DNA of 64,000 nucleotides. Origin: Obrimoposthia wandeli. Taxonomy: Eukaryota. The notes below the pieces were generated by a model. That model ran no database searches. It was not told the DNA's origin and saw only the letters and a list, made by a program, of their open reading frames with translations. The stretch is taken from contig CDROCS010001843.1 of assembly GCA_977020255.1 (NCBI GenBank), positions 124,001 through 188,000 on the forward strand, in the 5' to 3' direction. The translations under genes and the position numbers were made by a program. Below are positions 12,231 through 61,794 of this stretch, in pieces (the stretch's first letter is position 1; every line of letters starts with the position of its first letter).

Positions 12231-12471
12231 AAAAATAAAAATTTTAAATGTTTTATTTTGAATTATTATTTAAATCTCTAAAAATATAAGGGTAAAATAA
12301 TAAAAGACATAAGACAAATTTTTTTAATACATTTATTAATCACAACATCACAATGAGATATGTCAGCAAAGATAAGGTCCATCCTAAAAAATGTATTGAA
12401 ATAACAAATAAGTTAGAGTCTAGGTGCCATAGGGATCTAAAATTTTAAAAAACTAAACTAAAAAAATCAAA

Positions 12472-12672: not shown

Positions 12673-12742
12673 TGTTTGATGTTGTTGTTGGTTGTTGTTT
12701 TTGTTTGTTTGTTTGTTTTTTTGTATTTTTTAAGGGCCTTTT

Positions 12743-27012: not shown

Positions 27013-27250
27013 TTAGCCTGTTTTATTAGACATGATACTGCGTCGCATCGACTGGTTCATTTTATTCTGCACAGTACTTTTCCGAAACCGCTCCGGCATC
27101 TTCGCCTGGTCCTTTTCCCAATTCCAGTCCACAGTGTCTTTACAAGGACGCTTTCGCACTATGCCCAGAATGAACTTACAGTTTTTGCAGATGTGCATCG
27201 CGTCTTTGCAACAGTTTCCCAATAGAGGACACACAGCACATGGAATCAAG
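27013..27250 (-). CDS. LITAF-domain C-half terminal exon (C1)
   Basis: Acceptor TTTTAG|C; LIPCAVCPLLGNCCKDAMHICKNCKFILG contains the second CxxC knuckle of the LITAF domain. Confidence 0.8.
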
Positions 27251-30200
27251 CTAAAACGAAGATGGAGGATGGTCACCAATTAACAGGATTTTGGTAATAT
27301 ATATTTTGACGACGCTTATCGCAAAAGTATTATGCATCAAGGGACAAGGAGCACCACAAAAATAATAAATGGTTTAAATTTATAAATATTCAAATCAGTT
27401 TAACTTTTAATACTTGTTTTAAATGTAAGTTAATTTCGAGACTTGTCAACAATTTTAAAATCAATCGAATGTTATTTTGTGAGGCATTGTGAGGCATTGA
27501 CACGATACGTTTGAGATACGTAATGTAAGTTATATAATTTTTTCAATGACTAATAATGAATTTTGATATATGTTTTAAAAAATCGATATATTTTTTGATG
27601 ATTTTGTAGTTATTTTTAAATTCACAATAAAATGATAACGTATATTTTTACATTTTTTTCGGATAATGATATTTGATTTTTAACAACAGAATTAATTCTT
27701 TTCTGAAGAAACATTTTTATATTTAGGCAATGACATTAAATCATGTGGACATATCTGTTTTTATTTTATATTTTTAGATCCCAAAAACTGAAATGAAACG
27801 AGTTCAGATAAGTGCTGCACAAAAGCAGATATTATGAAAACAAGAGAAGACTTTATACTTACAAAATTCAAAGCTGTCTGATTTCTTCACATAAAACCCA
27901 CAAGATAAACCGATTAAGGATCAAAGCAAATTTTTGCAATAGAAGAGGACGCAAATACTACTTCAAATTAAATACCTAATGACTTTGGAATTTTTGAGTG
28001 CCCACAAGCAGTTTCATTGAGCACGTCATTGGAAAACAAATCCATGAAGAGTATAATTATTGGACCATTCATTGAGACGAATCCTAGTTGTTATTTGTAC
28101 ATAAGCTGAACGCGTATTGGCCTTTTTGAGATCGGGTGAAAGATTGGGATAAATCTGTGAAAGAAACATTTAGGGTTACTTGACCTCATAAGTCCGTTTG
28201 ATCTATTTTTTGATCCATTACAGGTCACTTTTTGAAATACGGAAATTTTGACAAAATTCAAACAATCGAGACATTTTCTTTTCTTAGTGATGCGCCATTT
28301 AATGTCATACTGATAGGAATGAGGAAAATAAATTATTAACAATTGTGGGTTATGAGTATCAATTTATTGATGATTCGTGTCGTTAATTTCATTTTATCCT
28401 GAATATGATTTTGGTTTAATTTTGGGGTTACAATAGAATATTACAATAGAGTATAATAACTTTTTAATTTCGAGCTGCAATAATTCGAAAATGTTAACTA
28501 GTGTACTTGTTTCTCTATTTCTAATTATTTATTGGTCTGATTCTCATTTGTGCTCGCTTTTGTGATCTTCCGTTCCTAGTTTCAGTACTTGGTTTTGATC
28601 TGCTGGAAGTTATGTTACTTGATTTGATCCGACTGCAATTCCAATATTTGAGTTCCGTCTGACAGTTCATTTTGTTTGCATTGATTATTTGCTGACAATT
28701 ACAGTGTCGAGTTCTTAATCGAAATGATCTTGATTTGCGACTCTTCCGTTCCGATCCAACTCACTTCAATTTCAACAAAAATAGATTTGTGTCAAACTGG
28801 AAATAGGTTTTTCTTATATACCTGCCTACCGACTTCGAACTTGCTCGCCCGCCGGTGGCCAATGGAACCAATGAGGATGGATGTCACTACGCTAGAATTT
28901 GAAGGTCAATTAAATCGACGAGGCCGGATGTTGCTGTGCTAGACTCCGGTGGCCAATTTGTCAAACTGGACCTTAATCAGCTGGATACCGCCGTTGTATA
29001 TGGTGACTTTCACCGATAATTGCGATGTGGATTTCCACCATGCAAACCCGTCGGCCCCTCGAGCTCCGGCTCCAATCTTCTACGGCATCCTTCTACACTT
29101 TCCCCAATTTAGAAACACACTTTCATGACATTGAGAAGGTTCCAAATTTCTTGATTTAATTTAATAATTTTAAATGAGGAGGTTGTTCAGGCAGCATAAA
29201 TGACTATTTCGATAATTTTATTTTGTCTTTCCTCATTCCTAACAATTTGAAGGTATAAAATTAACCTATCTAAGCATTTTGAAACATTCAATAGTCCGTT
29301 AACAAACGTGCTCCTTTAGTTAGAGGTATATTTTCTATATAATCACATATTTCGTGCAATAAGGTACACCGATCAATTTCCTCGACACTTCATTTTTAAT
29401 ATATACTCTATAGAAAAATAATAAATGCTCAATTTATTCTGTCCCATGTTTGCGTGTCGTAAAGTCTATTATATTAGGTAATTAAACAGTTTTCAGGGCA
29501 TCATTTCTTTATGGGTCACCTGATTTAAAGGAATAGTATCGTAAAAAACAATGCAGAAATTTCATAAAATAAGAATCCAACAAATAAGAATGCAATAGCA
29601 AAATTTTCTAAAAATCATCATCTAACATAAATCAATGATACCATGAAAGCTGCTTAGTTGCATACAGTAGGAAGCACACACAAGCAAACACATGGCAGAA
29701 AAATATGGGTACGTGCTATTTTTCTAATGTGGCAAACTAAATGTGAATTAAAATTATACAAATCAAAATAAAATTTGCTTATTTGTAGAACAAATAATTT
29801 TCAAGGTAGAAATGAAATAATTAAAATTAAATATAGAACCAAATTATTAAAAAATAATTAAGGGTAAATATTAAAATTGGGCAGCATAAAAAATAATATA
29901 AATATGGAAATGTTGATTACAACAACTGGGAAATGTTAAATGCACCTACTGCATCAAATCTATGGTTAGAACGATTGAAAAAGTAAATATAAGTCGAATG
30001 CAAAGCCTAGTTGATTGCACAGAAAACTAGACACCAAAATCGCTGCAAAAACTTTGAGAAATGACTTCAGAAAAGCAGGACCAAACAACTGGGACTATAC
30101 GAGGATCCGAAACCAAAACATCTTTACTGCAAGAGTGGCGAATCGCACCAATTTTAACTTAAGTTAGTATAATGATTGAGTCTTCTTATTATAGGATAGT

Positions 30201-30859
30201 TACAGCTTTTAACACTTTTATTAACTTGAGAATCCATATAAAGTTTCTTTTTAAACAGAATTCCCAGATTGATGATAAAATCTTTTCCCTATACCTCATT
30301 GTTATCGATTTTAAAGAAACCTTTTTAACTACACTATAAATCTGAAAGTATTTTTGGATACAAAAACAATGAATTATGCCTTTCCTTCAATTAATTTTCA
30401 GCTTTTATCTTAGTCAAAATTTCAATTTTCCTCAAATTTCAACAAAACAATCAATCAGATATGAAAGAAAGAGTAAAAGTAGCTGTTTCAAAATAAGAAT
30501 TGCTGAAACTAAATGGTAAGCAAAGAATCGTAGGGGGCTGCTCAAAATCGCTGTTGATGAAATTCAAGTATCCTATGCGCTTAGTCTTTGAATTTAGTAG
30601 GCCAAAATAACCACCGTATCATCTACCACCTGTAAACTGCTCTTGTTCAGTTGAGAAGTGTATGTATGTCTAAGGACATGTATAGATTTTTGTGTAGTTT
30701 GAGTAGTACAGGAAGAGGTATGTGAGTGTAGACGGATATAGTTAAAGTAAATACTGTCGCTCCCGAAGAGCGCGATTTTTTGGTAGTTACATTCAACCAT
30801 GTCGGGTGCGAATTTTGGTAGCCTGGAGGGGTGCGTTATTTTAGCTTCGCCGAATAGGG

Positions 30860-30923
30860 GGCTTTAAGACAGGAGGGGTAGGGGAGGGGAATGAATGGAT
30901 TAGACCGGACATATCCACCTACT
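30860..30923 (-). mobile_element. isolated family A-like Polinton terminus
   Basis: GGATTAGACCGGACATATCCACCTACT is the reverse complement of the family A end; similarity fades after about 30-60 bp. Confidence 0.7.
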
Positions 30924-32495
30924 AACGCTGTATTTTCTTTCCAATATGTCTGTACGATAACCTTTGATCATGATAAACCAAAATTTCTCCCTCTTCGAAA
31001 TCCAATAATGCTTCACATTTACCTATCAAATTTTTTTATAATAAATCGTCGTCAATTTAACAAATAATTGTAACTCATTTTTACGGATTCGTTTATTTAC
31101 AAATTTTATTTGTGATACCGTAATGTATCTTCCTAAAATGTTTATTAAATTCTGAATAATAATAAGAATATATATATAAATAATAATCGTAACTCGAATA
31201 AACATACTAAACATCCAGATATTATTATTTTTAATTATATAGGATGTTTACACTTGCATGTGGTATTTACAATAAGACATCAAGTGAATATATTTAATTG
31301 GTTTTCACGGTACCTATACGGCATATTCTACCTATATACACCACTTCACTAAATTCAGTGTTTAAATTTAAATCCGTCCTTTAAGAACACTTTTTCTAAA
31401 ATTATTAAGAAATTATTTTGACTTGTTTAAAACACATTCATAAACATATTAATTTCCTCTAGATTTGTAATTTTTTTCAAAATCACAAACTAATGCAGCC
31501 TAAAAGTTTGCTATTTATGACAAAGCATTTTACGAAAAATGTAACTGTGTTATGAATGAAATTTTAATTAGATAAAGTGAAATTTTATTATTGAAATTTC
31601 CAAATTTTTTTTAATGTAATGTAAATTGAATCTAATTAATTGTATGGAATGATATCCAACAATAATTTGTAATTTATATGAAAACAAACTTTACGAACAA
31701 ATATAAAAACATAGACACAATTAAATTTCAAATTCACAAACATATGTTAATACAAATCGCAAAATAATATCAAGTTATAACTTCCGAAAATATATGGATC
31801 TATGGAATTGGAATACTAATTTATTATCTATATTAAATTATTATTTTATTATTTATTTTCACATTTCGATTTTGATAGATATTCAAATTCTATAACGATA
31901 AATTATTTTATTAGTTTATCATTTTATAAAGATGTGTGGGAATTAGGATTAACTGATTTAAGAAACAGGTCATTTTCTAATGAGCATTATAGAAAGATTT
32001 TCATCAAATTATAATTAAGACATAAAGTAAAAAGTAAAAGAAAATAATAAACTGAATGCAATAATATATTATGTTATCAGAGAATTTAGCCAAAAATAAC
32101 TAAGATAAATTCATAATTAGTATAAAGTAGCACAAATAAATATGATAACATAAATAAAACTTGGAGAAAAAAGTAAACTCAGTTAAAATCAGCAAAGTTT
32201 AAATAAAATGTCTAGTTTGAGCAGAATGGACTTTCATAGAAATTTTGTGAAAATTCTTCTTTGTCATTTCAAAATTGAAGTCTAATCAAATTATATTTTT
32301 GATTTATTGTTACTTTGTTTCGACCTTTTCTTTGAAGCTAGTTCAAACCATCTTGTAGTCAAATTCTTTGGAAGATCACACGAACAGAATAGCCAAAATA
32401 TGCACAAGCTAATTCTATGTTAAATTTTCTCCTAATTCCAAACCGGTTTGTTTACTTGATGCATGTAGTTCTTTGATTTCCGCTTCTTCACTTGA

Positions 32496-32877: not shown

Positions 32878-34499
32878 CTGAAAAGGTTAAGATTGGTCTT
32901 TACTTTGCTGAATAGAACTCATAAAAATTGTAAAATTGATTCCCTTAAATATCTTTTATGTTTTGAAGCACTTAATCTGTCATAAAAAGTCATTGGAAAT
33001 AAAAGTTATCTGACAAAATAAATCATAGCCAAAATATACGTTTGAGATAAATATGTTAAAAAGGATTCTTTGACTTCTTATGTCACACAAATCTGAATGC
33101 ATAATTCAGGGATTGAATGGGCATGTTATACATCTATTGTGTTGAGCACAGGATATATGCGAGCAATAAGGCACATTGTCCAATTGTTAGATTAAGGGAA
33201 AAAATAAATTAAAATAAATAATGCATTATTTATAACAAATATTTTACCTCAAAATATTCAAAGATTAAATATGTTTTTTTTAAATAAATTAAGGCCTTAA
33301 AGGTCATACAAACGAATATAAGAGAATGAAAGTGTAGAAAAAAGGCTTAGGAAGATTGTGGAATTAGTTAGAGATTTAACAACTAGGGAAGTCAATAACT
33401 AGCGAAATAAAATGAGTCAGTCGACTTAATTCGTGAAATTTCACACCGTTCGCGAAATTCTCGATACATCAAGTAATATCCGGACAACAAAGCTCTGCGA
33501 CAGTATCTGACCGACCAACGATTCAGCGAGTCATCACCTCGAGTACACAGTAACTTTGAACACAATAGCAAACCATAAACAGAAAACAACAAGTATACCA
33601 CTAGTTTATCACTAAATGTAACATAAATTTCTACATCATCAACTGAATCTCGGTCCTATTAGCCAAATTCAAATTATGATTTATCAAAAGTTGACTTTTT
33701 TCACAGGTTTTCTGGCAAACAGAAAAAAGGGAAGCTTCAGTATATAGAAAATAATGATAAGAATTTAAAATGTCTTAGTGACTGTAAAATTTTTAATAAA
33801 ATGTTGTTTATTTGCAGTTTGAAGCAATTGTTTTTATTTATTTTTATTACTTATTTTATGTTATAGTATCATTTGTAAAAACAAACAAAAAAGTCAATTA
33901 AATAAAATCTTATTTCATAATTTTCTTCAAAAAATTTCCGAAAATAATGCATGAAAATTTAGAAATCATATTCAAGTTTTATTATTTAATTGTTCATATT
34001 TTTATAAATTTTTAAATTAATTATTAAAGGAATTTTTATAAACTTATACATCAATACTTGTATAAGACGAATAATAAAATTAAAATGATTTAATTTTTGT
34101 TATATTTAAATTTGCAAATAAATTTATTTTAGTTTTCAAATAATTACTATGTACATAATTATTGTTAGAAATCTTCACAAAAAAATAAATATTAAAAAAA
34201 AATAAGGGAGGGCTTTCAACTTGGACACTCAGAATAATATATATATAGATAATGGTAAAATATCAAAGCTTTTCCGTGCGAAGTTAAAATAAGTCTGTAT
34301 TGAGCCAAAAGAAAGTCTAAAAGATATTAAACGAATTAAATTTATTTGATCAAAAATACTACAAAATCTAGATTTTTTTCAGTAAAGTAATTCTTAAATA
34401 TAATGAGGATTATATATATATATATATATATATATATAACTAGTAATTTAAAGAAAATTACTTTTTTGAAAATGATATCAAATGTAAATTACAAATATA

Positions 34500-39199: not shown

Positions 39200-42183
39200 A
39201 TATTTAAATAAATATGAAGTAAAAAATGATTTAATTTATTTCTTAAGATTTCTTAAATCCCTGAGAACAGATATTTCATTTGTGATGATGATAAATTGTC
39301 CTTTTCTTTTGAAAAATTTTAATTTTTTTATTTTCCTAGAATTTAACTTTATATGTTTTAATTATTTCAAAATTTTCTAAATTGTTACCTTGATATTCAA
39401 TTTTATATAGCCTTTTCATAACCTACCATTTATAAGTTAATCATATGATCATATCGTGTTTGATTTCATATTAATTTCCATTTCACAATATCGATTGAAC
39501 ATTTTTCTTTCAATTTGATAGTTAAACTAATTTAATATATTAAACCAGTGATTCATAAAACCATGAATCGCGAAGAAACTCTAATAGATCGGTTGTAATT
39601 ATGTTTTTTTATTGTTCCTATATTAACTGCAATAACATTGTATTCATATATATTAACAAACTTAACAAATTGTAAAATTAAATTTTCAAAAATTAATAAT
39701 TTAAAAAATAGGAAAAAATCAAAATATTATTTGTAATAAAATAAATGACTATTGAACTATTTTAAACTATTAATTGTTATTTAGATTCATCTAATTAATA
39801 AAGTACCTCAAAAACCCTAAGTATAGTACGACAAAATATACGATTATCCACGATTATGGGAAGTTATATGGACGTTATAGAGTTATATTGTTATTAAAAA
39901 AAATGGCAAAAAAAATTATAAAAATATGAACAAATAAATGGATTCTTAATTTTGTAATTAAGTGAATAAATTTGGAAATGCATATATTATAAATAAAAGT
40001 GAATCACGATTGTTTAGTTTAGTTTTTGTGAGCCTCTAATTCTCAAATCTTAAAGTATTGTTTAAGGTATTTATTAATTTTGAGTTTGTTCATATTTGAA
40101 TTGTAATATCTGTGTAAGTCTGAACGTTTGAACGAATCTTTTTGCTTGAAATTTGGTGTCATATTCCTTTCTTATGCCTTATTTTCTTTTTCAATATTCT
40201 AACAGATGATGCTCATATCTAAAACGGCCTTGAGTTGCTGTATTAAATTCTTCTTCGAATATTCGAGGCATTTTTCACATTCAGCAGCTACGTTTCAAGA
40301 CAGTAGCATATTTTTGTAATATCTGTAAACTATCTCCATTTAATATTGATAGAAACGTCTGAAAAAAATCGGTATGGTGTACATGCGAGAATACTGGACA
40401 ACAAACTTGCCTTTTTTCTATTGTTTTCCTAAAAATATGAGTATCTAGACCTATTTTATGCTGATTTGAATAAAATCACTTGGATTCGTATAACATTTAC
40501 TTTTCTCGCAAAATACACAAAACTATTCATGCATTACAATTTATTTAAAAATTTACAAACATTATATTTAGTAAAATATTTAATTTTGATGGTCTGATCT
40601 AAACATAAAGTTGAACTTGATGAATCAATTTGTAAAGATAATATCGTATGCCTATCGTAAAATATCATTAAAACTGCATTTTTTTCAAAAAATTTAGTTG
40701 ATTGAAGTGATGAGCATGGCAAATGGTTTCAGCAAATGACATTTATTCAGAAAGATCAGATCAGATAATGCTAGGGGAATTTTGTTAGTCTTTATATAAA
40801 GAAAGTTCGGAAACATTCTACATAAGAGAAATCCGCAAATCAATAAACTATTGTCATAAAAATGCATCTAAATTTGTATGTTTTTCTAAATATTGTATAT
40901 TTTTAAGTAACTTCATACATGTGTTACGTACTATATATGGATAATAATTTAAAAATCGATATTTAAAAAAATAAAAAATCTACATGTGTTAGAATGTTTG
41001 GCTTAGCATATTTGAAATCAGTGTAAAATTCCCCTCTATAAATTTATTGTTATATTTAAAAAGAAAACGTGTTGTTCAGTGTAATGGACATATTTTATAC
41101 CGTTATTTCAATGGATGTGGGGGCGACAAATCGATGAAAGATTATGATGGAGGGTCTAAGTGGTGTATATAAATTCATCCATGACACAAATCAAATTCCT
41201 TTACATTGGAATGTATGTAAATGGAAAGGTTTCCTTTACTTAGGGATGATAGTATTATATAAGGTTAGGATAAAGATTACTGTAGTAAAAATGGTTTCTG
41301 AATTCAATCGTTGTAAGTAAAGTATATGGTCACCCATCAGAGCAAGTGTCCATACTAACAAAATTGAAGGAGGTTATGTGCGAATAAATAAAACGTTTAA
41401 AATAATTAATGGATCAAACAGAGAATTAATAGTTTTTTCAGATTGAAGGCTCATCAGGAATATATGTTTTTGAAAATGTGGTTCTTAAGATTAGTTTTTA
41501 ATATTCATTCAAACTGTAAACTAAGGAATCCATTTTGTATTTTCTCAAATACTTCACAATGCTCAAAAACTTAACAACAATTAGTGTAAACTCATGAATC
41601 CATTTGTTTATTTATTTTGAAAAACCGCGGTTGTGTTATTTTTTGATATAGTTAAACAAAACACTTCGCAGTCTTGTTTACTTAAATTAGGTGCAATTTT
41701 AATTGCAACACAAACATATACGTAAAGTGAGTCTATAGTTTTTGATTAATGCATTTCTTTGGATTTTCTGTATCAATTAATTTACTACAGTAATATTTAA
41801 CATAACCTCATATTATGTGTTCTATTAGATTTCATAGAAAAATGTTCTTAGGCAATATGTTAACGTTACATTAGATATACGAATTAAAATTTAAAGTATG
41901 CTTGGAAACATTTGAATTTTTAAAATTGAATAGAAATCGTAAATATCTGAAGTTAAAAAAGAAAGCATCTGATGTATATACATTTATTGGTTAAGCTTTC
42001 AATGAATATCAGAGTAGTTAAGACAGTATGCATTATGGAGTCTACATGGTTTCATTCTGTTTAGGATTAATTAGTTACAAATTATACTGATTAAGTGTCT
42101 GGTTCGATCACGCTGCAAAAAACAGTTTAAGTAATAGTCATCTTTTTCTTCACGACATCAAATGAGACTCGTAAAGTGAACGT

Positions 42184-42580
42184 TCATTTTTTGGTTTTTG
42201 GCCTGTCACCCGTTTCCAAATCGATACTCTCATCTTCTCCTTCTTCTACTTCTCCTTCTCCTTCTCCTTCTCCTTCTCCCTCTCCTTCTTCGTTTTCTTC
42301 CTTCATTTCGTTATCGTCAACTTGCAAACTTAACTGCGACTGACGGCGATCTTTCTGCTTCTGCTGAATATTGAGAACGGAAATGCGCATTTTGCGCCCA
42401 ATTGTGGTACCTCGGAAGCGTTCCGGCAATTCGGGCTGATCACTCTCCCAGTTCCAATTGACGGAGCGGCCACACGGTTTCTTGCGGACGATACCGAGAA
42501 TGAACTTGCACTGACGACAGATATGCATGACGTCCTTCAGACAGTTGCTCAGTAGCGGGCACCAGAAGCAGGGTATCAGA
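42184..42580 (-). CDS. LITAF-domain C-half terminal exon (C3) with acidic (EG)n tail
   Basis: Branch-like CTAAC and acceptor CTCAG|T; LIPCFWCPLLSNCLKDVMHICRQCKFILG. Confidence 0.8.
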
Positions 42581-45500: not shown

Positions 45501-46828
45501 AGAATTTTTTAACATTGCTACAGTTCCTTATATTCATCTGTTGATTACTGTAAAGATTCGGAGCATAAATTTAATATATTCCATAGGAATGTTTGTTATT
45601 TGAAAAGTTTTTGACCAATCTGCAGTCATCATTATTGTTCCTAAAATGCATTTAGATGCTCACTGCGCCATGCTCGAGAATATCATATAAATTTTTAGCT
45701 TTTGTTAGAGAATACATTGTTTGATAATAATGAAGCTTCATTAAATGTTTACTTGTACTAGCAATTTTCTTCAATTTAAATACAATTCTGACGTTTTTTT
45801 GTAAAATTGTAATATTAAACAGTAGAGAATTTTCAAAATCAAAACTTGGTGTAATAATCGCATGCGTAATAGTCAGCATTGTAGCTAAATCAGTAGCTAG
45901 GTATTTTCTTATTAAATAAATCTTTTTTATATGACTGTCTCATAGCTATTTCATTAATAATATTTTCCATTTCAGAAAATGTGATTTCTTAGTTTAGGTT
46001 TTGGAAGACAAATAAGTTTGAACATTTTTAGATTTCAGAAAATGTTTAAAATTGGATTTCATCAAGTATTTAACTAAATTATTCCATTTTCTGTAATATA
46101 CAAATCGTATTTGCGTATAAAGAAGTTTGGACACTTCAGGGTAGAATAGGGTGATTTAATTTCATTTGCTAACAAAATTAGTGTCTTCAAAATGGCCTTA
46201 CATGCCTTAGACAATTAGTTTTGCTGCAATTTTCTAAGCCAATCTTCCACTTTCACTTATTCTTTCAAAGATTCCGTAGGATGACTTAAGTCTTTGAACA
46301 TAAACAATTTTTCATGATAAATATGATTTTCAAAACAAAAAAAACTTGAGAAACTGTTATATCAATCAAGTAAAATACATATTTGTTGGTTTGTTATCAA
46401 TTTTACTATTTCATTGCTAAAGTTTTACTGACAAATATTTGACATGGAATAGAAATATGAGCAGAATAACAAATGATTTCATTTAATTAACATATAAATA
46501 TCAAAATTACAAAATACATGCTTCATAAGCTTCATTTTTACTTTTTTGTCAGCATGTTTTTTCATGACATAGAATTTTAAAAAAAATTAAAAGAAACATT
46601 GGTAAATATCTCAAAATTTTCAAAAAATATACCATAAATACTGTCCATTTTTAAACAATCAGAACTTCCTAATCCGGAAACATTTGGACCTGACAAGCGC
46701 TGGATTTGAGGGTTCTTTAACTTAGGCTCCAGTATAAAACTTAAAATTTGCACCCTTTGTTTCTTCAAATCATAAATGGTAAAAGTACCAACACCATACA
46801 ACTAACTCCAAAGTTTCATTGAAACCCT

Positions 46829-49800
46829 AGTAGGTGGATATGTCCGGTCTAATCCACACCCATCTCCCCACTGTCCTTTAAAACCGTGCATGTGTGTGGA
46901 GTGAAATTTCGTGTATGTGTGTAGGAAAAAAATTAAAAGAAGTTACGAATAGGGGAGGGGGTACCGCTGTCCTTTAAAACCGTGCATGTGTGTGGAGTGA
47001 AATTTCGTGTATCTGTGTGGAGTGAAATTTTGTGTATGTGTGTCTCCAAATGGGGAAGGGGGGAGAGGTTCCCCCCACATTTTTAAAAAAAATTTTACTT
47101 TAAAATTTATCTCGAAAGTGGTTAGAGAAGACAGCGGGAATCCATATTGGACTCGAGGGCTCATCGCAGACGAGATTTCAAATAATATATTACTTTGTAT
47201 TTTCTGACGATTCTTATGTGCCAGCGCGTCAATAAAGTTTTCATGGTTTCTTATATGGTAGATGCACTAATTGGATTTCTCTTCAACATATTTAAACTAT
47301 TCCTCCGTGTAATAAAGATATAATTTGAAGAGAGTATATAATGATCAATAATGGGGAGTTTATTACGGACAATTATACGGATAATTAGAGAGATTACTAT
47401 GATCAATTAGTCAATTTACGATCAAGAGTATATTATTAATGTTAATATGCATCTTTAACTAAGAATTTTATTAAATTTCAAAATGATTCATTAAATCTAA
47501 AATGTTATCTACTTTCTTTTAAAAAAGTTTTGATTTGTAAAAGAATCTGTAAAAGTATTATTACTAGAAAATGATTAGTTTACATTTCTATTTTTTGTTT
47601 CAAATAATATTGTTTGAAGATTAGCTTATTTAAGGAAATTAATCTATGTAATTAATTAAATTATCACTAGTAAACATCGGATATCAATACCATATTGGAA
47701 CATTTTGTTTAGAAATTATTACATCAGGACTAGAAATGGATTAAATTATATTATCTCTTTCGATTCATTTAAACCTAAAATTATTATTTTTCAAGTATCA
47801 TTTATTGATATAATTTATTCAATAATGTTTAGAGTATGTATTTATCTCAGTCATAATTTATTCATATTACTATATTCTCAAAAAATAATTTTTCATTGAT
47901 CGATATATCAAACAAGAAAATTCTTACAAAACTCTACAAGCTTATTGATTCATTGATGTTATCAATATTATGGAAACTTATTTTCAAAAATCAACAACCA
48001 GTCGATTTATTACTTCAAATAAATCGGTCTAGTAAAGAAATTATACATAAAAGGTTCTATAAGAGAAATTAACAAGATGCATGAGATTTGTTACATTTAG
48101 ATGAGATATGACATGGGTGTTTATAAGGTTTAAGAATAAAAAATAATGAATAGAGTTTTAGAAGAGAAACTCATGATTTGTTCAAAAGGTTCTCTAGAAG
48201 AGTAATTAATACATAGAAGATTAAAGATAATAAAATAAGTAGCGGTTCAGAGGAGAAATTAACGATACGAGGTATCAAAAGAAAAAATATAGCCTAGATT
48301 GGATTATGAAGTGAAATTGATGTGATTTATTTAAGAGATTTAGGAATGGAATTTAGGAAGTTTATTACATAGAAAAGGAAATTTACGAGGTATTTAGAAG
48401 GTTATAGAAGAAATATTAATGCATAGAATGGTTATAAAAGACAAATTGAAAAAGTGTTCAAGAGGTTTCAGAAGATATATTATATATTTGAAGGGTTTAG
48501 AAAAGATTTAGGAGGAATGTTTAGAGGTATCAGAAAATATAGCCTTAAAATGCGTTTAGAGAAGTATTTAAAAGGAGTATTTAGGAAGTTTCAGAAAAAA
48601 GAAATTAAAATTGGTTCATAGGGGAAATTAAAGGGTTCCAAAGAGAATTTAACCGAGGAGTTCAGAAGAGAAAATATAACCTTACAGGAGATAAAAGGAG
48701 GATTTAACGGATATATCAAGAGGTTTCAGAAGAGGAAATATAACTTAAATTGGTTCAGAGGAGAATTTATATGGGGAGGTTTCAGAAGAAATTAAAGGAA
48801 TTTAGAGGGAGATTTAACAGGGAGTTCAAGAGGTTTCAGAAGAAGAAATTAGATGAATTTAGAGGGAAATTTAACGGGGAGTTCAGGAGATTTCAGAAGA
48901 AATTAGATGAATTTAGAGGGAAATTTAACGATGATGTTTAGATGGTTCAGATTAAAGCTTTGAAGGGTTTAGAAAATATTTAGCAGGGATGTTTAGGAGG
49001 TTTTGGTAAATATAGCCTAGATAGCTAGATTGAATAAAAATAAAAGCGATGTATATAAGGTTAGTAGGATTCAAAAGAAAAAAATATAGGATATATTTTA
49101 CTTTGAAAGGAAATTTAATGTGAGTTAGAAGATATTTTGGTGGTTTAGAAGGGAAATAAGACTAATGTTCTAAAACTGTAGTGAAATCGTATTTTATCAA
49201 ATTCCTGTCATTTAAGATTATGATATAAGCGATCATATTGAATTTCAGCTTTATACTGCTTCAAAGCGAGTTATACCAAAAATTAATCATAAGTATTTTA
49301 CTCATATTTCGGTAATAACGAAGACAATTTTTACAAAAGCAGAGATATTATTCAAACTTTTACCATCTTCTTGTATATTTTTTGCATATATTTTGGAAAA
49401 TTATGTTAGAATTAGAATTAGAGTATTAGAAGTTAGAGGTTAGATATTGAGTAATAACGATTAGTGGGCATATTCCCAATTATTGATTTTATAGTTGAAA
49501 ATAATCAATGATGTTGTAAATAGCTGCTTATAAGTCAATAGGTATTAAGGAAAACTTAAAAAAACAACTTCTGAGTATTGATAAAGTCATCATATTTTTA
49601 TAAAAAATCAGGTAAAATCTTTATGATTACTATTAATAGTTTTGGTTCATATAAATGGATTCTATCTTCATTAGACATTAAAAATACTTTTAATCAATTA
49701 ATATTAAGACATTGAACGAAAATTAACGATTTCATTAATACATAGTAAATAAGTTATTTTCAAAGATAGTTTTATCGAAGTCATCAATATTATCGTTCCA

Positions 49801-50819: not shown

Positions 50820-51397
50820 NNNNNNNNNNNNNNNNNNNNNNNNNNNNNNNNNNNNNNNNNNNNNNNNNNNNNNNNNNNNNNNNNNNNNNNNNNNNNNNNN
50901 NNNNNNNNNNNNNNNNNNNNNNNNNNNNNNNNNNNNNNNNNNNNNNNNNNNNNNNNNNNNNNNNNNNNNNNNNNNNNNNNNNNNNNNNNNNNNNNNNNNN
51001 NNNNNNNNNNNNNNNNNNNNNNNNNNNNNNNNNNNNNNNNNNNNNNNNNNNNNNNNNNNNNNNNNNNNNNNNNNNNNNNNNNNNNNNNNNNNNNNNNNNN
51101 NNNNNNNNNNNNNNNNNNNNNNNNNNNNNNNNNNNNNNNNNNNNNNNNNNNNNNNNNNNNNNNNNNNNNNNNNNNNNNNNNNNNNNNNNNNNNNNNNNNN
51201 NNNNNNNNNNNNNNNNNNNNNNNNNNNNNNNNNNNNNNNNNNNNNNNNNNNNNNNNNNNNNNNNNNNNNNNNNNNNNNNNNNNNNNNNNNNNNNNNNNNN
51301 NNNNNNNNNNNNNNNNNNNNNNNNNNNNNNNNNNNNNNNNNNNNNNNNNNNNNNNNNNNNNNNNNNNNNNNNNNNNNNNNNNNNNNNNNNNNNNNNN
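50820..51397. other. assembly gap (N run)
   Basis: Run of N characters. Confidence 1.
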
Positions 51398-51552
51398 TTT
51401 CTAGGGGGTACCCCCCCTTGTCCTTTAAAACCGTGCATGTGTGTGGAGTGAAATTTCACTCCACACACCTACACGAAATTTCACTCCACACACATGCACG
51501 GTTTTAAAGGACAAGAGAGGGGTGTGGATTAGACCGGACACATCCACCTACT
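51398..51552 (-). repeat. family A terminus (reverse orientation) containing a 40-bp perfect inverted repeat
   Basis: Ends ...CCGGACACATCCACCTACT at 51552; inverted arms 51417-51456 and 51476-51515. Confidence 0.85.
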
Positions 51553-51645
51553 ATTACTACATGTTAAATATTTAGGTCAGATTTATAAGAGAAAAATTAG
51601 ATAACTATATAATTTAGAGGAGTATAAACAAAATACGAGTCAAAA

Positions 51646-52318
51646 TTATTTTTCAAAACATTTATTAAACATAAAAAAATATATATTGGCTTCACTCAAA
51701 GTCCAAAGAGGCTGCATTTTCACGTCATCAGCAAAATATCCATTGAGACTTATTGAGATATTCCATAGTTCTTCATCTAGAATTGGAGCAATCAAATATC
51801 CTAGATCATCTTTAAAATCCAGACTGGGATCAAATTCAAGCTGGAAACAATTTTCTTCATATACATTATCAGGAATGTAAAATCCCAAAATATTTTTCAA
51901 TTGATCAATATAAGATGTTGTTAAAATTTCGATGAGATATTTATTCTCCACTTTTGATATTTTCACAGGATTCATAACTCGTATAATTTGATGCCTCTTT
52001 AATATATTACATAGTTTTTCTTTTGAAATTATTTCTGGATAATAAAAATTTCCTACACATCTCAGAAGAGAATCCATTCTAAAATAAGAAAACTGAGCCT
52101 TCTTCAAGAATCTGACTTTGTGTTTGAAATATTGTTTCACTTCTTCATACATATCCTTATCCGATTCTTCAAACATTTCTATATCTTCATCATCGCTTAA
52201 TACCAGTTGGCTATCGTCCCTCGTTGATAATTGTCTTTGATATGAATGCATTTACTGTGATTTGTCCTCCAATGGCGCATTCTTTTATACTAATTTCTAA
52301 CAAAGACATGAATCTCAT
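51646..52318 (-). pseudogene. second copy of the unknown Polinton A accessory gene
   Basis: Homologous to 7531-8055, with a longer middle segment and a 5' frameshift. Confidence 0.7.
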
Positions 52319-52500
52319 TGGTTAATATAACTAAAGCATTGAATTTGATTGGACTAAATCCTTATTAAAAATCAAATTTGATTGGAAGAAATATATCATC
52401 CAATTATAATAGGTTTGCAAGATAATTACAAGAAACGTGCAATAAAAAAGCAGTTTCAGACATATATAAAGTAGATTTTACAGAATACAATTTTAGTCTA

Positions 52501-52915
52501 ATGAAAAACGTAGATATAAATTATAAAGGTAGAACAGAAGATGATGTTTCGTACTTACCATTCAATGAATGGAAGCCGAGACAATATGTGGAAAAGTTTG
52601 ACAATTTCACAGTTGTTATTTTTCCTACAGGTCAGTATTTTATTTTATTTTCATATTGAATTATTTTAGGAAATTGTCGTGTTATGAGATGCAAAATACC
52701 AATGCTTGGGTTCAATTTACCATTTGGAATTCGAATCACTGCAATACAATCAATCACGATTTCGGATAATCTTGGGAAACTGATAAATAATTTTAAAACT
52801 GCTGAGAAAATGAAAGAAGAATGCATGTTTGAACCAGAAAAATTTTGATTATCCAGACATTGTTGATTTGATTTTAGAAAATATATCTTATTACATCTTG
52901 TTATCTTTTCTATAA
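52501..52915 (+). pseudogene. second copy of the TBP-like gene (intron 52631-52669; second repeat core deleted)
   Basis: In-frame splice CCT ACA G|GA AAT; deletion after GAACCAGAA with GAAA(A)ATTTT microhomology. Confidence 0.78.
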
Positions 52916-53253
52916 ACAAACCCGTTTAAACTTATTGTTTCAAATGAATAATACTATAAATAGAGACAATGAAGTGGATCGTCTTGTCGACGAAATATTT
53001 TCTGGAAAAATTAGGGGTAAAGAAATTTTATCAGAATTAAAAAATAATGATATAACAAGAGATAACATTGAAATATTGGTAAGATCATACGTTATTCGAG
53101 AATTTAGAAATCGTTCACAAATAAATAAAATTATAGCCAAATATTCAATTATTAATTTTTGTATTTCATCTACAATAGCTCTAACATTGTACATTTCAAT
53201 AAGGAAACTTCTATGATAATATAAACAATATTAAAAATGAAAGAGTATATGCA

Positions 53254-53898
53254 ATGTAGCTAAATAATAATGCTGTATTTTAAATAGTTGGCCCTAGTGG
53301 AAGTTGAAAGACACATTTCGTCTGTAAATTGTTGCAAAATGAATCTATTTTCAAATCTAGTTTCAAAAATATTTATTGGCATCATGGTGGAGGAGGGGAA
53401 AGCGGGTTAACCAAAACAGAAGTTTGCAAGTTGAAGGGTATACAATTTATTGAAGGATTTGATGCAAATTGGTGTGAAAGATTGAAAAAAGAAGATGTAA
53501 TAATAATTGATGATTTGTATGAGGCTAACAAGGAATCGGACTTTAATAATTTATTTACAAAGATTGCAAGACATCGTGAAGTAACAGTTATATTTATCAC
53601 TCAAAATCTTTTTCACCAAGGAGGTCACCATAGAACAAGAAATCTTAATGTACATTACTTAGTTTTATTTAAAAATCCTAGAGATCAAACAGTTGTTAAT
53701 TTCGTGGCCAGACAGGCGTTTCCCCAAAATAAGAACTTTCTAGTTGATTCATTCCACGATGCTGCTAAACAAGCACATATGTATATATTTATTGACTTTA
53801 CACAAGCTTGCCCAGATGATTTACGTGTTTTAACATACATATTTAATTCTAAGGGAGTAACTGTTTATAAACAAATAGAGAACAATTATAAAAAATAA
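53254..53898 (+). pseudogene. Polinton packaging ATPase, full length but with three early nonsense codons
   Basis: Same motifs as 9081; TAG, TAA and TGA (the last in Walker A) relative to copy A1. Confidence 0.9.
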
Positions 53899-54077
53899 AT
53901 TCGCAATGCCTTTTACAAAGTTGATAGTAAAACGTAAAGTAAAATCTAAGAAATAAAAAAAATTGAATCATTAAGAAAAAAGAAGTAAAAAATTTTAAAA
54001 AATATGTAGTTAGAAATAAAAAAAAACTTAAATGGCTTCGAATATAAACAATATTCAAATTGAACCTTTTTATTAAA

Positions 54078-54407
54078 ATGAAGAAATTACAAAGAAGCAT
54101 ACCTTATTTTAAAGCTTTAGTCAAAGCCTCTTCTCATAAGAGAATGCTTATTATTAAAGCATTTCCATCCTTTGTTGTAGATGATTTATTGGAAGTTTTG
54201 TATAATATAGTTTTGGGTCGAGTAAAAGTTGGAAAACGGAAAAATATATTAAAGAAATATAGAAAAACTCTTCTAGATATTGCTAATGTAAAAAGTAAAA
54301 AAAGGAAACGAAATATTATTACTAAACAGAATGGTGGTTTCATAGAAGCTGTTATTTCAGTTGATGCTTCAATTATCAGTAGTATTATAGCTGCGACACG
54401 TTCATAA
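54078..54407 (+). CDS. conserved small basic Polinton protein with QNGGF motif
   Basis: DDLLEVLYNIVLG..LKKYRKTL..KQNGGF; canonical position between ATPase and integrase. Confidence 0.7.
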   Translation: MKKLQRSIPYFKALVKASSHKRMLIIKAFPSFVVDDLLEVLYNIVLGRVKVGKRKNILKKYRKTLLDIANVKSKKRKRNIITKQNGGFIEAVISVDASIISSIIAATRS

Positions 54408-54493
54408 ACAATTATTTATAAAATCAGCTAAAGATATGGGTGCTAGCCCTTCTTTACTTAAACGTAAATTGTCTTTCTATTCAAATTGTTGTA

Positions 54494-55519
54494 ATGGAGA
54501 AGATATGGTTCAATCCAAAAGATCCAATTGGCTACACAGGAGTTTCAAAATTAGCAAAAAGAACAAAACAAAATTACAAGAAAACGCAGAAATGGCTGAG
54601 CGACCAGTTAGCCTACAGTCTAAACAAGCCGACGAGAAGAAGGTTTCCAACTAGAGCTTACAAAACCAGCAGTCCTAATAATTTATGGCAAATGGATTTG
54701 ATGGAGATGATCCCATATTCTTCCATTAATAAGGGATATCGATATATTTTAACATGTATTGATGTATTTAGCAGGTTTGCTCGTGCAATTCCCGTTAAAG
54801 CAAAGTCTTCAATAGCTATCCTTGAAGCCATTAAAGAAATATTAAAAGAGGACATTCCACAAAATGTGCATACTGATTTAGGAAAAGAATTTTATAATAA
54901 GCAAGTTCAATCTTTATTTAAACAAAATAATATAAATCACTACTCTGTGTTTTCACAGTACAAAGCAGCAGTAGTAGAAAGATTTAATCGTACTTTAAGA
55001 GATCGAATAACAAAGCATTTCACAAAAGGAAATAAAAAATGGATCCAAGTTTTACCTCAAATAATACATGCATATAATCACTCTGAACATAGAGGTCTCA
55101 AGGGAATGAGACCTGTTGATGTTACTAATAAAAACTCTATGGACATTTGGATGAACATAAATAAAAAAGATAAAATTAAAAAAGCTAAATATAAGAAAAA
55201 CGAATATGTTCGAATTTCGAAAATTAGCTCTACTCCATTTATTAAAAACTTTGATCAGAATTGGAGCGATGAAATATTTTGTATAAGTAAAATTGATCAA
55301 AAGAGTAATCCAATAATGTATACTATTAAAGATGCTGACAATAATATCGTTCACGGTAAATTTTACGAGCAAGAACTACAAGTAATATCAAATAAACCTA
55401 GCGTTTTCTGTATTCAAAAAATATTAAAATCTAAGGGTACAGGTAAACATAAACAATACTTTGTTAAATGGCATAGTTATTCAGACCCAACTTGGATATC
55501 AGTATCTAATATAATATGA
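54494..55519 (+). CDS. Polinton retroviral-like (rve) integrase with C-terminal chromodomain-like region
   Basis: DDE triad WQMDL / VHTDLGKEF / VVERFNRTL; C-terminal KILKSKG..QYFVKW; ORF open. Confidence 0.93.
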   Translation: MEKIWFNPKDPIGYTGVSKLAKRTKQNYKKTQKWLSDQLAYSLNKPTRRRFPTRAYKTSSPNNLWQMDLMEMIPYSSINKGYRYILTCIDVFSRFARAIPVKAKSSIAILEAIKEILKEDIPQNVHTDLGKEFYNKQVQSLFKQNNINHYSVFSQYKAAVVERFNRTLRDRITKHFTKGNKKWIQVLPQIIHAYNHSEHRGLKGMRPVDVTNKNSMDIWMNINKKDKIKKAKYKKNEYVRISKISSTPFIKNFDQNWSDEIFCISKIDQKSNPIMYTIKDADNNIVHGKFYEQELQVISNKPSVFCIQKILKSKGTGKHKQYFVKWHSYSDPTWISVSNII

Positions 55520-56563
55520 ATTCTATGTATATGGTATGTATATGTCCGAAGACTCAACCAGATAATGACGCTAGTAGCTTTATTATCGATTGGGAAAATT
55601 CTATAAATCTCCAAGGAGAATGGGAAGCGGCTTTAACAGAATTTTCTTTTTATTATTCTCCAATTACTATCAAAAAAACTCACATATTTCGTTTACAAAA
55701 GAAGTTGATCATGAAAAAACAACTGAAGTTGTGATCGTGTTTGATAGTAAAGGACAATTCTATTACAATTGTATAGATAAAGAAGTGAAAGTAATATTTG
55801 AAAATAATAACATTCAGATTTAAAAATCGATTAAAATATCTTCAAGTTATTAAAATAAACTTTGAATCTAAAAAAGAAGCTCTTCAATTCAGTTTTGATA
55901 GTGAACAAACAGTAGCTCGTAATAAACGGGATATAGCCTCATCTAAATCGTTTAAAAATGTTCCTGATACAGTAACAAAAGTGTTTTTAGTTGAAACGAG
56001 ACCAAAGTATGTAGTGGAACTGAAAACGTTTTCAAAAGATTATAAAATAGATAGTGAAGTGAATTTCTGTAAATTAATACAGAAGGAATGTAGTGAATAT
56101 TTGGATAAATGTGTAATATTAAATGGTAAATTAACGTTTACGGTAAAGAGCAACATAAAACGGGTTTTATTTGATGATAAACTAACTAAAAACCTTGATT
56201 TAAATAGATATACCTTTGAAACCCATACAATAAAAACCATAAAAGCTAAAAATAAGGCAAAACCTTTAAATGTCATTAATCATTTATATATTATACTAAT
56301 TTAATAGAATCAACGCTTGTAGGAGGACAATGAGTTCCACTTTTGAGAACAATATGGATTTCTCAAAATGAAACTGAAGATTGGACGTTGTCGGTATGTG
56401 TATAGATCAACCAATGTATCTTCCAGTTGCTCTCTTTTCTATAAACAAAATTGAAGTAAATATTAGAGATAATCCCGGACAACTAATAGATTTCACGTAC
56501 GGGGCCAAGACAAGTTTAACAATACATTTAAGAAAACAAAATGGTGAATCCAGCGATAATTGA
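55516..56563 (+). pseudogene. Polinton minor capsid (PX), frameshifted
   Basis: N-terminal ..LQGEWEAALTEF motif and C-terminal motifs as in copy A1, split over three frames. Confidence 0.8.
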
Positions 56564-56915
56564 GGCTTATAGTCAAAGCCAGCAAGGTGGAGAATTACCA
56601 TATTTTGTTGGTAAACAATATGGATCTGGCTGGCTTAGAACATTAGGTAGATTTGTTTTTTTTACTTTTAAGGAGACTCGGGCGGTTTATATCAAAATTA
56701 GGAAAGGATTACCTTTCATCTAATGACAATAAACTAATACCAACTTTTAAGAAGCATGCGCTTGATGAACTTAATAATGTTTTACCTGAAGTTGCTAATT
56801 TGATTAGAAAAGGTAAATCAAATAAAAGCTAAGGAGGAAGTGGATTTAAACGTAAAAAGAAGCAAAGAATTAATATAAACAAACGTAAGAAAGTTGAAGG
56901 AACAATATTTGCAAA

Positions 56916-57650
56916 ATGAATTGCGCCAAAATTGAATTGTGTATTTTTGATAAACCACTTCCACAAGTAGTTGTAGATAATGCTTCCTTTGAAGAAATAT
57001 TTCTAGTTAACTCAGTTTCAGGAACCACTTTAACCGATTTAGAATTTAATATTAATGGATCCAATAGCGAGTATTTAGATTTGAATGATACTTTGCTTTA
57101 TGTTCAAATAAAAGTATTAAATCGGGATAGTACTAATTTAGAGAAAAATGCAGATGTAACACCTGTAAATTATATCTTTAATTCTTTATTTAGTGATGCC
57201 ATTGTTACTCTTAATAATGTCAAAATTGAAGGTGGAAATTCTTCATATGCTCATAAGGCTTTGATTGAAAGTCTTTTGAATTATAGTACTGATACTCAAA
57301 AAACTAATTTGGCAACCATTGGTTATGACGAAACGGTTGCAACTCGTAAAGAATGGATTGCGGGTTCTAAAGCTTACGAAATGTGTGGGTCTTTGAGATT
57401 GTATTTCTTTTGACAACCGAAATATTTAATTCCCGGTGTTAATGTACATCTTCGTTTGAAACGTAATAAATGGAATTTTTCTTTGATAAGCACAGACGTT
57501 CTAAACCTAGACTTGATATTTTGGATGCAAAATTGTATGTCCGAAGAGTTAAAACCGAGCAATCAGTTTTAATGGCTCATAATATAGGAATGGAAAAAAA
57601 CAATGCTTGTTATCCTATTAGAGAAACTAAACTTATATCCTATTCTTTAG
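56916..57650 (+). pseudogene. Polinton major capsid protein, truncated
   Basis: Near-identical to the first two-thirds of 10615-11840; homology stops at TATTCTTTAG (57650). Confidence 0.88.
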
Positions 57651-58329
57651 GCCTCTCAGGACCTTCCTCACGTTTTTGGGAGCACTTTGAGATTTTCAAT
57701 TTTAAAGGGGTTAATTAATTTTTTTGAGTGCTGGGTGGGGGGTAGAAAATTTCACTCCACACACATGCGCGGTTTTAAAGGACAGGGGGTGTGGATTAGA
57801 CCGGACACATCCACCTACTGCCCCTATATCCATTATTTCATTAATTCTCGATTTTCCATCCATTACAATGATGTAAGATTGTGGATTTTGATACTGTAAA
57901 CAGATTCTACATCTTTGGTTGTTGATTGAAAGTATTGGGAAAATGAAAATTGACTATTTTTAAATATATCTCAGACAACTAAAAAATAATATTATGAAAA
58001 GTAATACTACATAAGATAAACATGTTTGGTAACGTATCAGTTCGTATTTTCAAATAAAACATATTCGAGTTAAAACCTTTTTAAAATATTAAAAATAAAG
58101 TTTTATGAAAGTAAAAATGAAATAGCAAATGCAATGGAGTTTGAAATCTTAATTATTTGGGATTTACTGGATTTAGGAGACCATGTTGTAGTGATAATTA
58201 AAATGTATCTAGTTATGTAATCAGAAGCCGGAAATACCATACTGAGATAATTTGTTTAGAAAGTCATACATAAATGAATAAATCTTCTGTTTGTAAAATC
58301 TGACTCTTTGAATTAACTCTACGATGAAA

Positions 58330-59150: not shown

Positions 59151-59548
59151 TTTTTGAAAAATGTATTTCAGATGAATTAAAAAGGATTATCCGTACCTTA
59201 ATTATTCGAAAAATGTTGCAATCCTAAAATTATAAAAACTCCATAAACACGTGTACAAACAAGGATTCGTCTTTTTACTACATTTTAATTTTAATGTTTA
59301 TAATTTTATTATAACATACCAGAATCATATATAGTTTGGAGAAACTACTGTCAATTGAAGTGCCTATCTAAGTTATATATATATATATATCTACTGAGTA
59401 GTTTATTACATTTGCTTCTCATAAAGTATTAAATCGAGCATGCAATTAAGAGCATTTTAATGGAAGTATGGTATACATCTGATGTATATCGTCCTTAGTT
59501 GAAGACAGTGTAAACTGTGAAGGAATAATTTCCCAAGAAACCACTCAC

Positions 59549-59684
59549 CATACCATCAGCAAGCCCACCACAGCGGCAACGGTCATCGGACCCATCTTGT
59601 ACTGGACTTCAGTTTCACCCTTGTGGCCACATCGTGGGCAAGTGATCTCAATGGCGTGACCTTTCTTCACTCTATCCATTTGTT
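59549..59684 (-). CDS. LITAF-domain N-half exon
   Basis: Acceptor ATACAG|AA, donor TG|GTGAGT; AIEITCPRCGHKGETEVQYKMGPMTVAAVVGLLMV is the first CxxC plus the hydrophobic segment. Confidence 0.82.
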
Positions 59685-61390
59685 CTGTATAAAAACTTTC
59701 ATAAATCACGGGTATACATTTTATAAAAAGACATTCTACTGAAGGAGATGTCATTACTTAGGAAATTATAAAATTTCAACCATATTTTTTGTGCAAAAAC
59801 AAAAAATTGCATTATACATATAAAAGTTTATTAAAAATCTGTTCGGGCATGAAAACCACTCATCGGTAGTAACGGAAAATGAAAATAGCTGTCAAGTTTG
59901 ATAACAGTAAGATTACAACTTGACTTGATTTGAAATTAAAAGATTTTTTTTATTGATTAGTTTCTGGTCAGGCCTAAATATTTTAAGATTTATTTAGTGA
60001 AAATGATGCCTGTGATTATGTCTTGTAATAAGAATTCTCATAATAAAGTACAATGGTGACTTTTGAGGTCTTGGTTATTGTGCCAAACAAAGCAAAGGAG
60101 TCTGTGTTAAGTATACTTTTGTATATTTATGTTATGATAAAAAGCAAAACATATTAAAGTTAATAATTATTTGTAATACGTTTTTGATTTTTTTTGTAAA
60201 TATTAATTAAATTAATATTGTTAGAATAGAAAAGTTTAAAATAAATAATAAAATGAATATAGAAATAGGCAAGGAATAACCTCTAAATGAAGATTATAAA
60301 TTTTAGAAAATTAAATTAATTCAAATAAATTAAATTACAAAACTTACTTAATTTAGGACCTTGAAAAAGTCATAAAAATGTGTTTATAAGTAAAAGAAAA
60401 AGTGTTAAAAAAAGCCGTAGAAGAATTAAAAAAAGAAGCGAGAAAAAGTGTTCTGAGGAAAATTTTGCGAAAATTCACACTAGTGAAGTTATGAAATCTG
60501 CATAAAATTCACATTAAGTGAAAGTTTCACATCCACAACGAGATTACAAATTACAGTCAGCGACTGTAAACATCCGGTCTTTAGTCAAGCGAAATTCATT
60601 CGTTCACCTGGCATATCACATCGACTGCCGATCACCCCAGCGATATCCAGCCTCGGGTTCTAACCACCGGATCAGTTATAACCTACATCCGGTATCGTCT
60701 ATCGGATATTGTCAGGCCAGTTCACAGGATTCCAGTCAAGTACATAAAGGACGATACTTACCATTTTAAGCACAATTTAAATAGTTACAAATAAATTGAA
60801 TACGAAGAATTAGAAGAAGATTGATTGTAAGCAGAACTAGAAGAGTTGAAACATAATTTAGAAACATATATGTGGACCATTGACGACCATACTTCCAATA
60901 TTTTGTTTAAAAAATTATAAAATCTGACTTGAAGATAGCTTGATGGAGTAGAAATATTTGAACATATCATCAAATTGTATGTATGGTTTTGTATATTTCA
61001 ATATCTGCAACATATATTTGTGTATATGTTTATATTCAAAATTATCTTTATTACTAGAATTGTTACCTTCGAATCATGCGCGTGGAAACCTGGTGTTCTC
61101 TACAGGGAAGTGTACAAATCTCGGAAAACGGTCACCTTACACAACGCACCAATCTTGTTCAGAGGTTACCAGCTGTGAAATGAATGAAGAACTTCGACTT
61201 TCTCATTGGAGCCATGATTGTCTAAATCCCAGATTTTCAAGCCCAGAAACAGGGATAGACTTATGCACTAGTAGAACTATACGCAAGTACATACAGCAGT
61301 TTCTTTAGAAAATTCAAAATTAATGTTGACTAAATCATTACTGGCACGGTTCATTTTCATTAAATAATTATTTAATTAGTTTATACTTAC

Positions 61391-61794
61391 CATTAGTTAG
61401 GACCATTGGCTTGTATACTTTTGGTTGCTCAGCTGTTTCAGCTTCCGCAACGACTGATGGTTCCTTTTCTTCTTCAACTTCCTCTTCTTCCTCCTCTTCC
61501 GGCTCTTCAATATCGGGCTCTGTTTCAGGCTTTGGTGGTGGAGGTGGTGGAGGTGGTGGTGGTGGAGGTGGTGGTGGAGGTGGTGGTGGTGGAGGTGGTG
61601 GTTTACCAACTTTAGTTTTCGGTGGGGGTACTTTGGCCGCTACAGAGCGTTGCGGTGGTTTCTTATTTGCCGCCTTTGGAACGGAAATAGGCATTTTCTT
61701 GACAGTTAACATGGGGAATTTATTCAGATCATCTTTCTGGTCGATAGGAACCACCTCAGCGAAATAGTGTCGATCTCCGCGGCAACATTGACAT
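61391..61794 (-). CDS. proline-rich/acidic exon upstream of the LITAF domain
   Basis: Acceptor TTCAG|A and donor AATG|GTAAGT (phase 1) join exon 59684 in frame; polyproline tract is typical of LITAF-family N-termini. Confidence 0.72.

Follow-up and report, generated by a model that had tools for sequence, protein, structure and literature searches.

A LITAF-family gene of Obrimoposthia wandeli with a single exon for the first half of its zinc-binding domain and three homologous, putatively alternative terminal exons for the second

A LITAF-family animal gene, which encodes a small zinc-binding membrane protein, was found in a stretch of 64,000 nt from Obrimoposthia wandeli (assembly GCA_977020255.1, contig CDROCS010001843.1, positions 124,001 to 188,000 of the forward strand). 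This stretch is called the window below, and all coordinates refer to it. The exons of the gene all lie on the minus strand in collinear order. One exon encodes the N-terminal half of the LITAF domain (the N-half exon), and three homologous exons, each with its own stop codon, encode the C-terminal half (C1, C2, and C3). As the halves are complementary, one N-half stands against three C-halves, the phases match, each C-half has its own stop, and selection has kept all three, alternative terminal exons are the best reading of the locus. We consider it likely that this is one gene with three homologous alternative terminal exons; its splicing, exclusivity, and regulation are what we infer from the DNA.

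The first coding exon (exon 1, 61391-61712, minus strand) has its first in-frame ATG at 61712 and no Pfam match. Its product is proline-rich, with a run of 24 prolines, and then acidic. The frame stays open beyond the ATG up to an acceptor-like ttcag/ at 61795/61794 (a slash marks an exon border throughout), so the 5' end given here is putative. Exon 1 ends in phase 1 at AATG/GTAAGT. The N-half exon (59549-59684, minus strand) encodes the first CxxC (CPRC), then a beta-hairpin stretch, and finally the beginning of the hydrophobic segment. It is bordered by the acceptor ...atacag/AA, whose leading AA completes a G/AA codon (Glu) with exon 1, and by the donor ...GGTATG/GTGAGT. Its translation is QMDRVKKGHAIEITCPRCGHKGETEVQYKMGPMTVAAVVGLLMV, followed by the two bases TG that are carried over in phase 2.

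The three terminal exons, also on the minus strand, each consist of one base, a run of codons, and a stop. C1 (42184-42580) has 131 codons and a stop at 42186-42184, C2 (32496-32877) has 126 codons and a stop at 32498-32496, and C3 (27013-27250) has 78 codons and a stop at 27015-27013; they carry the motifs KDVMHICRQC, KDRMHICPKC, and KDAMHICKNC, respectively. A pyrimidine tract and an AG precede each of them, and the first base is T in C1 (42580) and C in both C2 (32877) and C3 (27250). Since TG followed by either T or C is a Cys codon, all three possible joins give cysteine at the border. C1 starts with LIPCFWCPLLSNCLKDVMHICRQCKFILGIVRK, C2 with LVPCAWFPLLSTCFKDRMHICPKCKFILGIVRK, and C3 with LIPCAVCPLLGNCCKDAMHICKNCKFILGIVRK, and the consensus of the three is L(I/V)PC...KD.MHIC..CKFILGIVRK.PC...V.WNW(E/D).DQ...P.RF. 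The introns measure 17 kb (N-half to C1), 9.3 kb (C1 to C2), and 5.2 kb (C2 to C3), and within these introns of 26-30% GC the exons stand out as GC islands (45-52%). An earlier note on this DNA had placed the N-half exon at 59684-59549 with a phase-2 end at TG/GTGAGT, and three paralogous exons at 42580, 32877, and 27250, each beginning with one base and then L(I/V)PC to give an in-frame Cys; the positions and the bases proved correct. The second-knuckle motif that it described, KDxxHxCxxC, is present in all three exons and can be narrowed to KDxMHICxxC. Its shared motif PC..V.WNWE.DQ..P.RF holds for C1 and C3 but not for C2, which has WNWD.

The LITAF domain is a zinc ribbon in which two knuckles flank a hydrophobic membrane-inserting segment, and human LITAF binds one zinc and inserts monotopically into the membrane (PMC5142333, PMC5095921). 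The exons were scored one by one against the Pfam profile PF10601 (zf-LITAF-like, LITAF/SIMPLE-like; 70 positions, cut-off 23.8 bits). The N-half exon scored 29.1 bits, above the cut-off, and covered profile positions 4-36 of the 70. C1, C2, and C3 scored 20.9, 22.4, and 21.5 bits, each just below the cut-off, and each covered positions 41-68. The two parts are thus complementary and do not overlap, so that the N-half and one C-half make exactly one domain. Read by eye across the exons, the hydrophobic segment between the knuckles runs MTVAAVVGLLMV, Cys, and then L(I/V)PC..(C/F)PLL, and the second knuckle KD.MHIC..C is invariant across the three C exons. The gene resembles canonical LITAF/CDIP1 in its CxxC, its membrane-inserted segment of about 22-25 residues, its HxCxxC, and its proline-rich N-terminal region (PMC5142333, PMC5095921). 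From the conserved ligands we infer that the protein would bind zinc and insert monotopically. The predicted structure of a C-half alone was uninformative (mean pLDDT 45).

When the three C-halves were used in an exhaustive profile search of 1.84 billion representative proteins, P0001 was the single match; it is an ordinary double-LITAF protein and matched in its LITAF part only. The gene for P0001 (L001:14661-16106, GCA_019343175.1, another animal) has a phase-2 intron that reads ...ILIV TT/gtaag ... cag/T FPLAW. As this distant gene is interrupted at the same point of the domain and in the same phase, the border between N-half and C-half is an old and genuine exon border.

A domain at the extreme C-terminus is typical of LITAF proteins, though not strictly defining. 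In human LITAF the domain ends the protein about 5-7 residues past the last CxxC, and the same is true of P0001. In contrast, all three C-halves of O. wandeli continue for 45-98 residues beyond the last CxxC, with a conserved extension of about 35-40 residues and then a variable tail. The shared extension, PC..V.WNW[ED].DQ...P.RF..KM..S, lies at 42355-42480 in C1, 32652-32780 in C2, and 27016-27150 in C3, and the exhaustive profile search detected no relative of it among the same representative proteins; it is an orphan module joined to a very common domain. The tails differ among the exons, as the earlier note had described. That of C1 is acidic with (GE)n and a pI of 4.5, that of C2 is basic and Ser-rich (pI 10.2), and that of C3 is short and basic (pI 12). 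The second half of the membrane hairpin contains three cysteines in C1, two in C2, and four in C3, and the two residues within the second knuckle are RQ, PK, and KN. Two coding microsatellites were also observed in the gene, both likely to vary in length among individuals: (CCA/CCT)n at 61510-61600 in exon 1, which encodes the 24 prolines, and (GAAGGA)n at 42230-42290 in the C1 tail, which encodes (EG)n.

There is one N-half exon for these three C-halves in the sequenced letters of the window. In tblastn against the whole window the N-half matched itself alone, the next match having an E value of 3.8, while the three C-halves matched each other at E values of 1e-27 to 1e-32 and nothing else. 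A looser scan for a CxxC followed by a hydrophobic run recovered only the true N-half as credible. Between C1 and C3 that scan gave one other match, at 31213, which was rejected because it is AT-rich and has neither a hairpin spacer nor a donor. Six-frame translation of the GC islands at 28773-29164, 30684-30982, 33397-33593, 46776-47103, and 60505-60785 revealed no N-half-like frame. The statement of the earlier note that no second N-half exon lies among the C exons is therefore upheld by both tblastn and the motif scan.

All three C exons are under purifying selection. Pairwise, they share 60-67% of their nucleotides and 63-66% of their amino acids. By codon position, the identity is 33-55% at third positions, which is near saturation, and 70-85% at first and second positions. 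Codons with a single difference gave synonymous to nonsynonymous ratios of 17:5, 27:1, and 15:8 in the three exon pairs. When changes were assigned to a lineage (two exons share the codon and the third differs), 9 of 12 were synonymous in C1, 3 of 4 in C2, and 8 of 13 in C3, compared with a fraction of about 0.2 expected under neutrality. In 5000 simulations of neutral change up to the nucleotide divergence observed, not one retained the observed protein identity together with an open frame. C1, C2, and C3 have all kept their zinc ligands, the AG of the acceptor, the phase, and an open frame, and 37 columns of the three-exon alignment (A1) are invariant. Saturated synonymous sites together with a conserved protein indicate that all three exons have been kept as coding since an old duplication. 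Recent gene conversion is made less likely by the synonymous differences that lie within the invariant CKFILGIVRK block.

The reading frames leave little freedom in how the exons can be combined. An in-frame stop lies 6-14 codons upstream of each C acceptor, with no ATG between; the C exons are not translatable alone, since the frame opens only that short distance upstream and without a start. Because exon 1 ends in phase 1, a direct join from exon 1 to a C exon that skips the N-half would shift the frame. With the borders predicted here, the only frame-compatible use is the join of the N-half exon to one C exon. Sequential splicing from C1 to C2 to C3 was considered and rejected, as the donor-like sites CGAG/GTACCA in C1 (phase 1) and TCC/GTAAGG in C2 (phase 0) are out of phase with the acceptors (phase 2). 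The U content of the acceptor tract is 0.27 in C1, the most proximal exon and the lowest of the three, 0.36 in C2, and 0.41 in C3; a weaker proximal site at C1 would fit regulated alternative last exons in general. The mutually exclusive last exons proposed in the earlier note thus agree with every prediction that can be put to the sequence (phases, Pfam halves, stops, and selection), whereas the joining in transcripts is kept here as presumptive.

We propose that an old tandem duplication of the last exon gave rise to the three homologous terminal exons. The constant 5' exons would be the proline-rich and acidic exon and then the LITAF N-half, and in each mature mRNA the donor at 59549 would be joined to exactly one of the acceptors at 42580, 32877, or 27250. 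Each join would complete one zinc-ribbon and membrane-hairpin domain out of the constant first CxxC and a variable second HxCxxC knuckle. Exclusivity would need no special device, because each C exon has its own stop and presumably its own cleavage and polyadenylation site. The choice would then be a competition between use of a proximal exon and onward splicing to a distal one, as in other alternative-last-exon genes. The three products would have the zinc ligands and the extension in common and would differ in the second half of the hairpin, the knuckle residues, and the cytosolic tails. With a combinatorial zinc site of this kind, a single promoter would supply three membrane adaptors that differ in how they behave at the membrane or in their partners, within a LITAF subfamily whose extension has no known relative; we favour this reading by a small measure.

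Several observations weigh against this model. A search of sequencing runs with C1 and its 3' region found no RNA run that contains the gene, and the RNA runs that were listed share 4-6% of the C1 words, probably through a simple repeat. Two runs of unknown kind, X22 and X23, perhaps from the source sample, contain 0.94 and 0.93 of the words of C1 and the 3' region. AATAAA hexamers are found near the C exons at 41988 (C1), 32308 (C2), and 27008 and 26993 (C3), 7-200 nt past the stops, but they carry little weight, since about one per 270 nt is expected by chance in such AT-rich DNA (30% GC). Docking and selector pairing, sought by short-word BLAST, amounted to no more than 13-16 nt at E values of at least 0.03, and no shared docking site or upstream motif was found; terminal exons need no such pairing. 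Neither word searches of protein libraries nor the exhaustive profile search gave an orthologue or an annotated isoform. The word searches for relatives of the C1 frame and of the exon-1 frame had no match among proteins of 0.55-1.75 times the query length, and a metagenome scan for the locus found none. Finally, the N-half and the C-halves are linked only through a scaffold gap.

This assembly gap (50820-51397; 578 N, an estimated size) lies in the intron between the N-half and C1, directly beside the left, repeat-rich end of a Polinton-derived insert. Exon 1 and the N-half are on one contig and C1-C3 on another, with the gap between them. Its flanks were compared by BLAST, as were the repeats described below, with the window (without 31700-32000) as the subject. 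The right flank (51398-51553) is a region of palindromic subrepeats at the end of the Polinton insert, whereas the left flank is unique. As the gap is more than 8 kb from the N-half exon and from C1, it is crossed by no reading frame. Continuity across it cannot be shown, so the gene model depends on the scaffolding. Probably the two contigs are joined correctly, as their orphan halves agree in strand, order, and phase. The gap could physically hide a 136-nt exon. Sharing of the N-half would be needed all the same, because the sequence from C1 to C3 (42.6 to 27.0 kb) is continuous and contains no N-half, and because the known N-half would then be without a C-half of its own in 51.4-59.5 kb.

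The gap bears directly on the idea that the locus is a row of tandem paralogous genes with one N-half per C-half, the missing N-halves lying in the gap, being too diverged, or having been lost by mis-scaffolding. A gap of 578 N between the N-half exon and C1, with separate contigs on its two sides, is what such an arrangement could exploit, but C1 is the only C-half that an N-half in the gap could supply. The continuous C1-C3 sequence contains no N-half-like frame: tblastn up to an E value of 50 gave noise and the motif scan gave nothing credible. The GC islands at 30684-30982 and 46776-47103 match the dispersed repeat of the Polinton ends. Co-duplicated N-halves should be about 60% identical, like the C-halves, and would have been found easily. 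We regard this arrangement as quite improbable. Somewhat less so, although still unlikely, is that only one or two of the C-half exons are in use now and that the remaining ones are duplicates silenced too recently to have decayed. No RNA run was found that would show use of any C exon, and few changes could be assigned to the C2 lineage (3 synonymous and 1 nonsynonymous). On the other hand, synonymous sites are saturated while 63-66% of the protein is identical, and ligands, acceptors, phases, and frames are intact in all three exons, so that any such death must have been very recent relative to the age of the duplication.

The C-half exons might instead be transcribed separately and joined to the common 5' part by trans-splicing, as happens in Drosophila mod(mdg4) and lola. 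In favour of this, the introns are of considerable length (17, 9.3, and 5.2 kb) and contain transposon insertions, and the sequence does not separate cis from trans. Ordinary cis-splicing, however, explains collinear exons on one strand, and neither a promoter nor a leader exon was observed upstream of C2 or C3. To our knowledge, trans-splicing is rare for such gene architectures, and we hold it to be very improbable here.

The Polinton-derived insert mentioned above (51450-57820, plus strand) lies in the same intron and contains an A32-like ATPase fragment, an rve integrase with a chromodomain, and capsid-like open reading frames (ORFs); it is no part of the coding capacity of the LITAF gene. 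It is a second, rearranged copy, 88-93% identical over about 4 kb to the first copy at about 7047-11351. The intron copy has an extra stretch of about 2.1 kb (53738-55852), which includes the rve integrase and chromodomain (54422-55516), and it ends at the point that matches 11351 of the first copy. A GC-rich palindromic subrepeat of about 50-100 nt is present at the Polinton ends (7047-7262, 51398-51553, and 57747-57819). It also occurs by itself in the LITAF introns (46828-47043 and 30896-30924), a pattern that would fit the spread of solo ends or of a small derived element. Beside the first Polinton copy, a tandem repeat (12448-12828) is open in several frames on both strands, reading PPTTNHQ on the minus strand and GGWWLVV on the plus strand. 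Retroelement gene fragments flank the LITAF gene at 22370-22843 and 62891-63199, with a reverse transcriptase (RT)/RNase H-like frame and integrase-like frames.

Genes with mutually exclusive, homologous terminal exons are already known, Drosophila pipe and the 3' regions of PGRP-LC being examples (PMC9013439). The likeness to pipe is close, as constant 5' exons are joined there to one of several tandem homologous 3' exons, which complete the same domain and bring their own stop and 3' end; pipe differs in encoding a sulfotransferase, in having more alternatives than the three predicted here, and in having isoforms shown by transcripts (PMC9013439). Unlike in pipe, the LITAF swap would exchange one knuckle of a single zinc site and half of a membrane hairpin. 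In PGRP-LC the exchanged units are whole extracellular PGRP domains, whereas in the LITAF gene half a domain would be swapped. What the two share is a common 5' part joined to alternative homologous 3' regions, and the choice in PGRP-LC is reported there to use competing RNA structures (PMC9013439). No competing structure was detectable at the LITAF locus. Internal mutually exclusive exons, such as the exon 4 and exon 6 clusters of Dscam, are similar in that exons were duplicated in tandem, length and phase were kept, and part of a fold is replaced (PMC9741552, PMC8373072). Internal exons of the Dscam type need a mechanism that ensures one and only one choice; the LITAF alternatives are terminal, and their exclusivity would come from termination.

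In the literature searched, alternative C-halves are not reported for any LITAF gene. The terminal-exon architecture is already known; its occurrence in LITAF would be new, and the particular feature of this locus would be the formation of one zinc site from a constant and a variable knuckle. Gene finders may drop two of the C exons or call them fragments, which is a warning for annotation. In invertebrates, LITAF has been studied as an immune-response gene. LITAF proteins are endosomal adaptors (PMC5095921). If the reading proposed here is true, the gene would provide the first example of a switch between isoforms within the LITAF zinc ribbon. Should transcripts confirm it, the gene would be a natural experiment in which the same N-terminal knuckle and half-hairpin work with three long-diverged C-halves, and the 37 invariant columns would mark the positions essential for zinc binding and membrane insertion, the others being free to tune function. 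LITAF would then be among the few genes that gain diversity through homologous terminal exons.

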